Origin: Epithemia pelagica
Taxonomy: Eukaryota; Protista; Bacillariophyta
NCBI GenBank assembly: GCA_946965045.2
Contig: OX337231.1
Location: 1,364,001-1,428,000, forward strand
Direction: 5' to 3'
Length of the DNA stretch: 64,000 nt
Shown in pieces: positions 53,947 to 57,280 of this stretch; position 1 is the first letter of the stretch, and every line of letters begins with the position of its first letter. Under the pieces are notes generated by a model. The model was not told the DNA's origin, made no database searches, and worked only from the letters and a program-made list of their open reading frames with translations. The position numbers were made by a program, and so were the translations under genes.

Positions 53947-54576
53947 GCACCTTTACTTTAGGGGCGAGGGCTTTGTTTTGCATCCCCACCATTGGAGCAA
54001 GGTTATCGTGTCCCTGGAAAGCTTTGTCGAGAGATGAAATTCATGGTTCATCCTGCGTCGAAAGCATCCCAGCTTGCGGTCGAAAAGGTTTCTGGGCGAC
54101 CAGTTGGTGGTGGGCATCGAAGTGAATCCACCCCCTTGTGCGACCGTGCACTAGTGACGGAAACGGGCAACTGCCCTTATTGCACAGACCGACAAGAAAT
54201 TTGTATCCTGCTGGAGTAGAAACTCCACGGTTTGTGCCGTGGTGGATGGACCTTTCGGTCCATAAGCAGCGATCATAATTTCTAGTTTAAGCTCTGGGAC
54301 CCTTTCGTAGTATTCTCCACGCCCAACTGCTCCGTATTTCGTTGCGAAAAGGAATGCTTTGTATGCTTGATGCGACTTGGACTCCACTCGATGGTGAGAT
54401 TGTCGTTCTCGATAGTGTTGCCAAGGCACCCACTCCGGAAGGCTCACTCCAAGTCGGAAGCACCACCATTCAGTGATCTTGATCTCCTACGAGCATAAAC
54501 TCCCTTGTCTTTTTGGAGAGGGAAACAACACATTCAAAATGATTGGAAGAAGCGATCATTAATTCCTATCGTGCCC

Positions 54577-56883
54577 TTAAAAGAATTGAAGGATGGCACC
54601 CAGTACCACCAGGCCACCGGACAACCAGGCATAGTATTGTTTCCATTGGATGGCTTCTTGTTGCTGTTCTTGGACTTGTCGCATTTCTTGTAATGTTTGT
54701 TGCAATTGTTGTTGTAAGTTCTCTCGTTCTTGTTTGGCTTGTTCATTCCCCTGCAATACTTGTTGTTGTAACTGCCCTCGTTCCACCCGACCGGCTTCCT
54801 GGGCGTTTCGTATTTCGTCTTGCAAGGCTTGCTTTTCCTGGTTCAGTCGATGTTGTTGTTGTTGATACTGTTTCAATTGTTCGGATTGTTGTTGTTGTAA
54901 CTGCGCTCGTTCTGTCTGACTTGTTTCCTGAGCCTTTCGCATTTCCTCTTGTAAGTTGTGCTTTTCTTGAACGAGCAGCGCTTGTTGTTGTCGATGCTGT
55001 TCCAATTGATCCGAAACTTGTTGTTGCAATTTCGTTCGTTCCGTCTGACCGGTTTCCCGAACCGTTTGCATTTCGTCGTTCAAGCCTTTCTTTTCCTGAG
55101 CCAGTCGAGCTTGCTCTTTTCGAAGCTGTTCCAATTGTTCCACCAAGGCTTGTTGTGCCTCTTGTTGCCGTTTTCGCTCTTGTGCTTGTTGTTCTTCCAC
55201 CTTTTGTTTCAACAACAATTCACTTCGGTCCATTTCCCGTTGGGTTGTCACGGCCAATTCCTTGAGCCAGGCTCCAATTTTGGTGGGCGTTGTGAAATTG
55301 CAATCGGCCATGTCATCCAACAAGGTCGAGTCGGTCGCATGTCCCAAGGCTGTCACCAGGGGCAATCGGCAATCCAAGGCTGTTTCAGCCAAGTTGGGAT
55401 CGTCAAAGACACCCAAGCCATCCCCACCTCCCCTTACAATGGCAATGACATGGACCGGTTGGCCCTGCTCGTTCACATGCAAGTCCTCCTGGGCCAACAA
55501 TTCTTGCAAGGGACCTGGATGAGAGAGATTCACTCGTTTCCAGGTCAGTTCGTATTGGGTTGCGACATCTGAGCCCAAGGCTTGTTGCACATCTTGATCG
55601 ACAATCGAGGTTTCTCCTGTAATGAAAAGGAGACGAGGGAGTTGGTCCGTCGTCTCGTGTTGGTCCTTGTCGTCTTGCGCATGTCCATGTCGTCGTGTCA
55701 AGAGTTTGTGTTTCAAGACATCTTCGACTCCAGTCGTACGAGGTGGTTGGTGTGCCCTTCTACGCAACAGTCGGAGTCGATGTTCTTCTTGAGGGGACAG
55801 AGGTTCCATGGAAGAATCGAAAAGAGCTGCTTGTGTCACTTCAAAGATTAATTGGACCGAACAGTTTTTCGTCACTGCCTTGCGCGTGACAAAGCCTTGG
55901 ACTTGCACCATTTCTCGTGCAGCAGCTCCTGTCAAGGAGGAGGAAGATGGACTGCGCTTGTGTTTTTGTGGACCGCCATCCAAAAAGACTTGAGTGTACA
56001 TGGTTTGAGGAATTTTCAAGGTAAGGACGCAATCGGCATCCGTGGCATCGTAGAGTTGTTCGTAGTAATAGCCCACATAGGATCGTTTGCTGCCAGATGG
56101 TTGTACCAAACCCTGTACCTGTTGCAATTGATGTTCGAGAGGTCCTTCCAAACGCAAAGAATTCTGAAAGAATTCACGAATGGAGCGAGGGGTCAACACT
56201 GGAGCAGCACTTGAAGTTGTTGGAGTGTTGTTGTTGGTTTTTGTATTTCTAACAGCGTCAAGAGCGCTTGAGTCGGGTGGTCTCTCGGATATTCTAGGAG
56301 ATTCCCTACGAGGAGGAGAAGTCGTATCCATAACGGAAAAGGAGGAGGTAGAGAAAAAGGACTCGTCGTCGATCAATGGTATCGAGGAGGAGGCCTTGGG
56401 TGTTGTAGATGTGGATGCCTTTTTCGATGCTTTCTTGGAGGTGACAGTGGATAACGAGACAGAGGATGTCACCCTTGGTGAGAGAATTGAGGTTTCATCA
56501 TCCGAGTTTGTTTCGGGTTTGATTCTTGGTTTGGAAGTGGCAATGGTCGTGGTAGAGGAAGATGCTTTGGGGAGACCATTGGTCGCCGTGTCTGTGGTCG
56601 TCGTCTTTGTCTTGGTCTTTGTCGAGGCTCGTCGGGGTCTCGTCGACTTGGTGGTGGTTGAGGAGAAACGACCCGGGCCACTGACCTTCGTCACGCCAAG
56701 GAAGGAATGGCGAGTACCATCAATTCTTGGAGGAACGTTTGAGTGTTGTGGTTGTGGATGCCAAATTGTGGATCTTCCAGAGGGTGTCTTTGGAACCAAT
56801 CTGGGAATTGAAGTCGCAGAAGGAAGGATTCTCTTCATGATTGCAACTCCAAGGATTTTCTGTTGTCGACAGGCCAAAGCCAT
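54577..56883 (-). CDS. xseA: Exonuclease VII large-subunit (XseA)-like protein with N-terminal presequence, coiled-coil repeats and C-terminal TM
   Basis: VIAIVRGGGDGLGVFDD...LPLVTALGHATDSTLLDDMADCNFTTPT matches the XseA catalytic signature (RGGG...F-N/D...P-x-x-S/T-A-x-GH-x-x-D...AD...TPS/T). It is preceded by an OB-fold-like segment (GYYYEQLYD...LTLKIP...VQVQGFV). Confidence 0.85.
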   Translation of the reverse strand: MALACRQQKILGVAIMKRILPSATSIPRLVPKTPSGRSTIWHPQPQHSNVPPRIDGTRHSFLGVTKVSGPGRFSSTTTKSTRPRRASTKTKTKTTTTDTATNGLPKASSSTTTIATSKPRIKPETNSDDETSILSPRVTSSVSLSTVTSKKASKKASTSTTPKASSSIPLIDDESFFSTSSFSVMDTTSPPRRESPRISERPPDSSALDAVRNTKTNNNTPTTSSAAPVLTPRSIREFFQNSLRLEGPLEHQLQQVQGLVQPSGSKRSYVGYYYEQLYDATDADCVLTLKIPQTMYTQVFLDGGPQKHKRSPSSSSLTGAAAREMVQVQGFVTRKAVTKNCSVQLIFEVTQAALFDSSMEPLSPQEEHRLRLLRRRAHQPPRTTGVEDVLKHKLLTRRHGHAQDDKDQHETTDQLPRLLFITGETSIVDQDVQQALGSDVATQYELTWKRVNLSHPGPLQELLAQEDLHVNEQGQPVHVIAIVRGGGDGLGVFDDPNLAETALDCRLPLVTALGHATDSTLLDDMADCNFTTPTKIGAWLKELAVTTQREMDRSELLLKQKVEEQQAQERKRQQEAQQALVEQLEQLRKEQARLAQEKKGLNDEMQTVRETGQTERTKLQQQVSDQLEQHRQQQALLVQEKHNLQEEMRKAQETSQTERAQLQQQQSEQLKQYQQQQHRLNQEKQALQDEIRNAQEAGRVERGQLQQQVLQGNEQAKQERENLQQQLQQTLQEMRQVQEQQQEAIQWKQYYAWLSGGLVVLGAILQFF

Positions 56884-57280
56884 TGTGGCCTTCAGACATG
56901 GATGGATCTTTTCTCGCGATTTCCGGAGAACCGCGGGGGAGTACAATGATCTGTGATGGCGACGGCCAGACTGGTGATATCTTCGTCGTCATCGTCCATC
57001 AAAATCAAAAGAATCCATCAAAATCCTCGCCATCATAACCACGGTCTCTTGTGTCGTTCGGTCCATCCACGAAGAAACGGTTGGAAAGCCCCTCGTGTGG
57101 TCTTGTGTTGTCCTCGTTGGTCCCCTGGTGCGTGTGTGTGGTGTCGCTTTTCTTGTTTGGTATCTCGTATCTTTGTGTGGGACGGTTCTTCGTTTCTGGC
57201 GCACCCATCACGTGTCCGTTACACACAACATGGGGCAAGAACAACACCCACGACGACGACAAGACTGGACCCATGGTGGT

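Follow-up and report, generated by a model that had tools for sequence, protein, structure and literature searches.

A tail-anchored homologue of the exonuclease VII large subunit in the diatom Epithemia pelagica, of probable prokaryotic origin

We analysed a 64,000-nt stretch of the genome of the diatom Epithemia pelagica (assembly GCA_946965045.2, contig OX337231.1, positions 1,364,001 to 1,428,000 of the forward strand; hereafter the window, in whose numbering all positions are given), which contains a gene whose product resembles XseA, the large subunit of exonuclease VII (ExoVII). The gene lies on the minus strand in an open reading frame (ORF) at 54577-56946 that opens at TTG and has an in-frame stop upstream; its first in-frame ATG is at 56883 and its TAA stop at 54577-54579, giving a product of 768 amino acids (aa). 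It is intact, intronless and present in one copy within the window, and is flanked by a convergent PP1-type phosphatase gene (Metallophos and STPPase_N domains) and a divergent gene for a 2-oxoglutarate (2OG)-Fe(II) oxygenase, the gap to the latter being about 210-350 nt. A first-pass annotation made from the sequence alone had described an intronless ORF among ordinary eukaryotic genes, and this description holds.

The same annotation had called the product an XseA-like homologue, and both checks that it proposed for this, a profile search and a structure search, came out in its favour. The window protein matches the Pfam family Exonuc_VII_L (PF02601) at 79.8 bits, well above the gathering threshold of 35.9, and its two diatom orthologues, introduced below, match at 83-97 bits; with the xseA equivalog model TIGR00237 it scores 76.3 bits, less than half of the cut-off of 180. 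By sequence, its only solved relative is E. coli XseA (PDB 8TXR, E 1e-7), and the Pfam OB models have no match in it. An AlphaFold2 model of the core (aa 228-575, from a 111-sequence alignment; mean predicted local distance difference test score, pLDDT, 89.7) begins with a five-stranded OB-type barrel, from which two linker helices lead to an alpha/beta domain; a long helix follows. In a Foldseek search of this core against the PDB, three 8TXR chains rank first (E 8e-16 to 1e-14, 362-365 aligned columns), and further matches are to OB folds (AspRS/LysRS anticodon domains, PriB, CST) and to type II 3-dehydroquinate dehydratase (1uqr), the latter reproducing the fold relationship to type II dehydroquinase described for the XseA catalytic domain (PMC10835039). 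Because the model and the Foldseek matches agree, we take the OB fold claimed by the first-pass annotation to be real, though unseen by Pfam. A full-length model has an unstructured N-terminal part (aa 1-227, pLDDT <50), the core, and helices at aa 533-655, 666-697 and 702-767.

The catalytic site is complete. Activity of E. coli XseA requires D155, R205, H238 and D241, as established by mutagenesis (PMC10835039), and all four residues are kept in the window protein, as D431, R484, H515 and D518. A HMMER alignment to 8TXR pairs R484 with R205, H515 with position 238 (the structure being of an H238A mutant) and D518 with D241, and columns invariant with five canonical XseA proteins are D431, R484, G485-487, G514, H515, D518, D523 and D527. 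The published family signature is RGGG(x)nGHxxDxxxxD (PMC2566859); the RGGG noticed earlier at 55423-55434 corresponds to aa 484-487, and the signature reported as ALGHATD...MAD..FTTPT is found as ALGHATDSTLLDDMADCNFTTPT at aa 512-534. The coiled coil and hydrophobic C-terminal end were also read correctly, the protein ending in ...YYAWLSGGLVVLGAILQFF, with its last ~19 residues forming a transmembrane (TM) helix that is its only hydrophobic segment; so was the composition of the first 54 residues, which contain 8 Arg/Lys and no Asp/Glu. Judged from sequence and model together, the diatom protein is a new eukaryotic member, of variant architecture, of the ExoVII large-subunit superfamily (Table 1).

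Table 1. Features of the XseA-like gene and its product, with positions in the window.
Feature	Position	Strand	Basis
Complete intronless coding sequence, tail-anchored XseA-like protein, 768 aa + TAA	54577-56883	-	ORF list and translation; Pfam PF02601, 79.8 bits
N-terminal extension, aa 1-227 (net charge +20, 35% Ser/Thr, disordered)	56203-56883	-	composition; pLDDT <50; missing from prokaryotic relatives
Presequence-like first 54 aa, no Asp/Glu	56722-56883	-	composition
OB-fold domain, aa 228-355, with subfamily motif YVGYYYEQL	55819-56202	-	AlphaFold2 model; Foldseek; alignments
Two linker helices, aa 364-399, common to the prokaryotic TM-type subfamily	55687-55794	-	model; alignment
Catalytic alpha/beta domain, aa 415-535	55279-55641	-	Pfam and TIGR00237 matches; invariant columns; 8TXR alignment; 1uqr fold match
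D431	55591-55593	-	invariant with canonical XseA
R484-GGG, aa 484-487	55423-55434	-	signature motif
G514-HATDSTLLD523	55315-55344	-	signature motif
FTTPT	55282-55296	-	subfamily motif
Helical stalk/coiled coil, aa 533-749, Gln/Glu-rich, ~215 aa	54637-55287	-	model helices
Three tandem 129-nt (43-aa) units in the stalk, aa 581-709	54758-55141	-	Tandem Repeats Finder: period 129, 3.0 copies, 73% matches
C-terminal TM helix (tail anchor), aa 750-768	54580-54636	-	only hydrophobic window of the protein

The first-pass annotation had likened the product to a divergent XseA-like subfamily of Bacteroidetes that combines a coiled coil with a terminal TM helix, and such a subfamily exists. A word-based search recovered a distant 528-aa protein (P0004) in which the motifs RGGG, GHSTD and FTTPT are combined with a coiled coil and, at the C-terminus, a TM helix. 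It is encoded on a bacterial-looking contig (L001:321-3887) with a RecQ helicase gene 50 nt downstream on the same strand, and an additional domain at its N-terminus (aa 1-97) matches PDC-S69, a candidate defence family of PADLOC. The same kind of search started from P0004 gave one extra relative only, the coiled-coil words swamping the candidates. A HMMER profile of the core, run exhaustively against 1.84 billion representative proteins, returned 14,646 matches at E<=1e-3 and 751 at E<=1e-10. The diatom type appears there once (P0001, 552 bits; one 50%-identity cluster), the top relatives are metagenomic singletons by cluster look-up, and below P0004 in the list stand hundreds of proteins of 300-460 aa that score 88-137 bits. 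In 133 of 157 collected proteins, nearly all of them prokaryotic, the most hydrophobic 17-residue window lies at most 12 residues from the C-terminus, after the coiled coil; as in the window protein, a C-terminal TM helix is the only hydrophobic window in P0001, P0002, P0004 and P0009.

The window core aligns with these TM-type proteins from the OB domain through the linker helices, and is 27-36% identical to them as against 21-25% to canonical XseA. Motifs common to both are YxGYYYD, IVDxDV, VRGGGxGLxVFDD and GHAxDxxLLDxxADxxFTTPT, and six other TM-type proteins, an Epithemia orthologue among them, score 59-95 bits with TIGR00237 (cut-off 180). In a tree of 113 rows, a branch of length 2.05 with a Shimodaira-Hasegawa-like approximate likelihood ratio test (SH-aLRT) support of 100 parts the TM-type group, diatoms included, from canonical XseA. 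A degenerate DNA pattern (GH-x10-AD-x2-F-x-TPT), applied to prokaryotic genomes at one per species, yielded at least 120 loci, the resulting taxon list being a sample; 97 of the 120 listed encode XseA-like proteins, about 40 of them TM-type. Carriers of the TM type among the matches listed include Chitinophagaceae, Flavobacteriaceae, Mucilaginibacter, Dyadobacter, Bacteroidales, Thermus/Deinococcales, Longimicrobium, an Armatimonadota metagenome-assembled genome (MAG) and a Nanoarchaeota MAG, and the named TM-type genomes among these matches are mostly Bacteroidota. The nearest clusters in the ESM Atlas carry PF02601 only and are mostly from Bacteroidota or Pseudomonadota.

On this sequence evidence, the window protein is a member of a large, undescribed prokaryotic subfamily of tail-anchored XseA-like proteins; we found no publication on TM-anchored XseA, nor on ExoVII in diatoms or other eukaryotes. 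The earlier suggestion that the protein had been rebuilt as a membrane-anchored one in the eukaryote is not supported, as those 133 proteins already end in a coiled coil and TM helix. Since the prokaryotic subfamily has both elements, anchor and coiled coil are inherited and are not eukaryotic additions.

Canonical XseA works with the small subunit XseB, and we looked for an xseB gene beside the TM-type genes. The pattern scan supplied a positive control in the form of 22 canonical xseA loci (encoding no TM helix) with a small same-strand ORF directly downstream, 3 of which were verified as Pfam Exonuc_VII_S (PF02609), and an XseB hidden Markov model (HMM) was built from the 22. This HMM, which recovers the 22 bacterial xseB, found nothing in the window or at the two diatom orthologue loci (best E 6.6), in agreement with the first-pass observation that no XseB-like ORF is visible in the window. 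It likewise matched 0 of 38 non-archaeal TM-type loci, so that among 39 TM-type loci only that of the haloarchaeon Halonotius has a match. The Halonotius terrestris XseA (L074:657-2180) has a C-terminal TM helix, falls outside the main TM-type clade and is followed directly by an xseB-like ORF, which suggests that membrane anchoring evolved on more than one occasion and is not necessarily incompatible with XseB. ExoVII tails differ in quantised XseB-site steps (PMC10835039); the notion that the 43-aa repeats of the window protein are XseB-binding modules was considered and rejected as unsupported, no XseB having been found in the window or at the diatom loci.

The genes next to those of the TM type show no conservation. 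Among 102 flanking ORFs surveyed, SRAP turned up in 4 loci, Xre-type helix-turn-helix proteins in 3 and the defence-associated reverse transcriptase (DRT) UG39 in 3, along with RmrA, REase-ARP, McrBC, a type I specificity subunit, ImpB and RadC. In four loci of Bacteroidota (L009, L058, L084, L114) a gene for an SOS-response-associated peptidase (SRAP/YedK-like) and the TM-type gene are less than 3 kb apart, a proximity that may indicate a link to the handling of abasic sites in single-stranded DNA (ssDNA) or of DNA-protein crosslinks. The locus of another TM-type protein, P0020 (L126:235-16407), holds a phage-type integrase, a 1295-aa MmeI/Eco57I-like restriction-modification enzyme, a Replic_Relax protein (relaxase) and a DUF87 ATPase, and looks like an integrative element. 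PADLOC-DB has no match for the window protein or for TM-type cores, although some of the locus neighbours match defence models. That TM-type genes reside in variable, mobile or defence-rich regions is only a lead, there being no background rate with which to compare these counts.

Close orthologues of the window protein were found in two further genomes: a 569-aa protein of Epithemia clementina at 58% identity (P0001, on a 2.77-Mb contig) and a 602-aa protein from the European Nucleotide Archive diatom assembly ERZ25042306 at 52% identity (P0002, on a 530-kb contig). The exact window protein is not on record in the assembly collection, and a metagenome scan with the three diatom proteins found no relatives. 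The two orthologue contigs (L002 and L003) are syntenic with each other and not with the window: each has a DUF6687 gene upstream of the orthologue and a homologous gene, of 834 and 917 aa respectively, downstream, and as neither flanking gene is in the window, the locus has been rearranged in one lineage. All three proteins bear an N-terminal extension of 134-227 aa; these extensions cannot be aligned in sequence but resemble one another in composition (Ser/Thr 27-35%, Lys/Arg 13-16%, net charge +7 to +20). Among the three, the triplication of a 43-aa unit is specific to E. pelagica, whose protein is longer than its orthologues because of these stalk units and a longer N-terminal tail.

The ORF is intact in all three species, which diverged tens of millions of years ago (PMC12377750), with catalytic residues invariant and a folded core that is 58-62% identical between orthologues, in contrast to the unalignable tails. 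The 23 read differences listed for the E. pelagica coding sequence comprise 14 synonymous and 9 non-synonymous changes, none of them in a motif. The sole indel, a 6-nt in-frame deletion at 55923 (~aa 321), lies in a disordered Ser-rich loop of the OB domain (~aa 302-323), and this deletion allele accounts for about half of the read-derived depth. Taken together, these comparisons indicate a gene that is apparently under constraint. Two features of the surrounding sequence were also observed. Upstream of the start, at 56884-57040 on the minus strand, are several out-of-frame ATGs, among them that of a 90-aa ORF (56720-56992) which overlaps the start codon in another frame. Given a sufficiently distant transcription start, these would serve as upstream ORFs. 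Downstream, contigs from runs X1, X2 and X4 include a minority form that skips 113 nt (54326-54440, ends CT..GA) between the stop codon and the PP1 gene; the ends are not intron-like, and the probable explanation is an allelic deletion within the 3' intergenic stretch that the two genes share.

The distribution of the gene is very narrow among eukaryotes: in the collections searched it occurs in three Epithemia-type diatom genomes only. The 2OG oxygenase next to it has orthologues at 57-76% identity in many diatoms (nearest in E. clementina; also in Seminavis, Nitzschia, Cylindrotheca, Chaetoceros, Thalassiosira, Fragilaria and Pseudo-nitzschia), and the same collection that holds these yielded no XseA-like protein from those seven genera. 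The first-pass annotation had proposed a bacterial-type gene acquired horizontally, and the combination of a prokaryotic subfamily with so restricted a eukaryotic range, showing none of the broad vertical inheritance it had named as a counter-indication, supports this. Published work had not seen ExoVII in eukaryotes (PMC2566859); it has reported that bacterial genes make up 3-5% of diatom proteomes and that E. clementina and E. pelagica uniquely share 51 candidate horizontal transfers, in a text that mentions no nuclease or exonuclease (PMC12377750). A scan of viral sequences pointed to no viral vector, finding only one chance match and a canonical-type XseA on a 166-kb contig; the latter (L130:2-784, from IMG/VR) is AT-rich, has the C-terminal domain and lacks a TM helix.

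The explanation that we favour, with moderate confidence in it as a whole, is that this is a functional nuclear XseA-like gene of the tail-anchored subfamily, acquired horizontally from those prokaryotes by the Epithemia lineage before the three known genomes diverged, then furnished with diatom-specific additions, and with a product acting by an XseB-free mechanism. After transfer the gene would have taken on the base composition of the host and gained the basic disordered N-terminal extension, and in E. pelagica the 43-aa stalk unit would have been triplicated. The tail anchor would tether the protein with its bulk on the cytosol- or matrix-equivalent side, dimerisation may fall to the stalk and TM helix in place of the canonical C-terminal domain, the OB fold would hold single-stranded DNA, and the D431/R484/H515/D518 site would trim its ends without XseB; possible substrates include protein-blocked ends, as for ExoVII. 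The most likely function is predicted to be that of a membrane-tethered ssDNA-end nuclease working without XseB. The roles in organellar ssDNA processing and in clearing foreign or retro-DNA raised by the first-pass annotation are speculation.

Several observations weigh against this explanation. The three diatom proteins form a clade (99-100) with a long stem, which stands in a polytomy of metagenomic proteins, outside the sampled Bacteroidota clades, so the tree points to no donor; an approximately unbiased (AU) test does not reject a tree in which all sampled prokaryotic TM-type proteins make up a single clade without the diatoms (p-AU 0.73). As nesting is not secured, the direction of transfer rests on distribution, with hundreds of prokaryotic lineages set against one diatom group. 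Purified canonical XseA is inactive without XseB (PMC10835039), and since the xseB negative covers loci only, independence from XseB is something we infer. RNA evidence is weak: the subsurface metatranscriptome X5 holds one 246-nt contig, with a single mismatch, over the low-complexity N-terminal part (56327-56572), near-identical enough to imply that this diatom or a very near relative was present in the sample, and strongly uneven depth over three genes in run X4 suggests RNA and was not counted as evidence of expression. Finally, the N-terminus is unconserved, and its hydrophobic moment beats that of shuffled sequences in one of the three orthologues (fraction of shuffles 0.012 in the window protein, 0.06-0.43 in the others).

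Competing accounts of what the gene is fare far worse. An intronless gene with bacterial-type relatives could come from a bacterial contaminant or an assembly chimera, an objection that the first-pass annotation had itself foreseen, and we give this next to no credence: the gene sits between two genes with diatom orthologues, its GC content at third codon positions (GC3, 0.47-0.51) equals that of its neighbours, the orthologues lie on long, mutually syntenic diatom contigs, and the proteins have a eukaryote-style low-complexity N-terminal extension missing in prokaryotes. Three runs of one study also hold the locus at ~99% identity with allelic differences; no read-derived contig spans gene and neighbours, the runs being stored as short unitigs. 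Hardly more credible is an origin by endosymbiotic transfer out of the cyanobacterial diazoplast, or vertical descent of an ancient eukaryotic gene that other lineages have lost. The host lineage does have such an endosymbiont, from which transfers to the nucleus are documented in E. clementina (PMC12377750), but the protein belongs to the TM-type subfamily, no cyanobacterial genome is among the named TM-type matches listed, and the 1.84 billion representatives contain only one diatom-type 50%-identity cluster. A decaying or neutral relic of transfer, with no present function, would account for a fast-evolving tail and stalk, the repeat expansion and an identity of 52-58% between orthologues over the aligned part; it is nonetheless very improbable, given ORFs that are intact in three long-diverged species, catalytic residues that are all invariant, a core far better conserved than the tails, and an excess of synonymous variants.

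Where the protein acts is a more tentative matter. The N-termini of all three orthologues are basic and contain no acidic residues; they also show no hydrophobic core of the signal-peptide kind, which makes the plastid and the secretory lumen less likely. The mitochondrial inner membrane, with the protein facing the matrix, is the most likely single place, and a place we name only tentatively; it is favoured because the bacterial topology (N-terminus in, C-terminus out) would be retained there and because the N-terminus is basic and acid-free. The first-pass proposal went further, holding that a canonical XseA was acquired and then given a mitochondrial presequence and a new membrane anchor to process organellar ssDNA. 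The basic, acid-free first 54 residues, the similar N-termini of the orthologues and the natural mapping of the bacterial topology onto matrix and inner membrane speak for that proposal, which we regard as doubtful as a whole: the prokaryotic subfamily had anchor and coiled coil from its ancestry, the SH-aLRT 100 branch separates the protein from canonical XseA, and the presequence-like stretch is unconserved, weakly amphipathic and embedded in the 134-227-aa disordered basic tail. Alternatively, the protein could be tail-anchored in the endoplasmic reticulum (ER) or nuclear envelope after GET-type insertion, its basic Ser/Thr-rich tail serving as a nuclear localisation signal or DNA-binding segment and its head facing nucleoplasm or cytosol, where ssDNA such as retroelement or leaked organelle DNA would be the substrate. 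A TM helix at the extreme C-terminus is the topology of a tail anchor, and runs resembling KKASKKAS and RPRRASTKTK occur in tails of net charge +7 to +20 in the three orthologues. We consider this alternative unlikely, an acid-free extreme N-terminus being more typical of organelle presequences; with its anchor and Lys/Arg-rich disordered tail, the protein would fit the ER or nuclear envelope about half as well as the mitochondrial inner membrane.

In the literature ExoVII is a prokaryotic enzyme and always an XseA-XseB complex; here, a eukaryotic lineage keeps an apparently constrained XseA-like gene, and a large prokaryotic subfamily, for which we found no describing paper, exchanges the canonical C-terminal domain for a membrane anchor without linkage to xseB. 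If active, the diatom protein would represent an ssDNA nuclease that is tethered to a membrane and assembles in a new way, as well as a clean case of a horizontally acquired enzyme of DNA-repair or defence type fitted with a eukaryotic N-terminal extension; its significance is limited by how common bacterial genes are in diatoms. A bolder scheme, which we offer as a long shot, is that the TM-type proteins form an XseB-independent membrane-tethered class that in prokaryotes, frequently encoded in mobile or defence-rich regions, would destroy or process, at the inner face of the membrane, ssDNA entering by conjugation, transformation or phage infection, and that Epithemia domesticated one copy to police ssDNA at the boundary of organelle or endosymbiont, for example limiting how much DNA leaked from mitochondrion or diazoplast becomes integrated in the nucleus.

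Compared with known systems, the window gene resembles the bacterial transfers described in Epithemia (PMC12377750) in being bacterial-type, Epithemia-restricted and fully ameliorated. With the prokaryotic TM-type proteins (for example P0019 and P0020, and those of Niastella vici, L017; Flaviramulus basaltis, L070/L082; Mucilaginibacter, L107; and Thermus thalpophilus, L111) it has the same architecture from the OB domain to the terminal TM helix. The two F. basaltis genes are paralogues ~0.5 Mb apart on one contig. The prokaryotic proteins are shorter (300-460 aa): their stalk measures ~40-100 aa and the N-terminal extension is missing, Met1 aligning near the OB domain. Some of them have lost the Asp of GHxxD, which the diatom proteins keep as part of a full canonical site. 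Like canonical XseA (Pfam PF02601 and PF13742), the window protein has an N-terminal OB fold, a dehydroquinase-like catalytic domain and then a long helix, with the full RGGG(x)nGHxxDxxxxD signature and the four catalytic residues. It differs from canonical XseA in its low identity (21-25%) and TIGR00237 score under half of the cut-off, in having no xseB found linked to its gene, in its long disordered N-terminal tail, in two extra linker helices, and in a post-RGGG loop two residues shorter (VRGGGxGLxVFDD, as in the TM type, in place of RGGGSxEDLWxFN). The C-terminal block of canonical XseA has no counterpart in it, either in alignments with canonical proteins or in the model: where the canonical enzyme carries an XseB-binding long helix and a beta-barrel dimerisation domain, the diatom protein ends in a TM helix.

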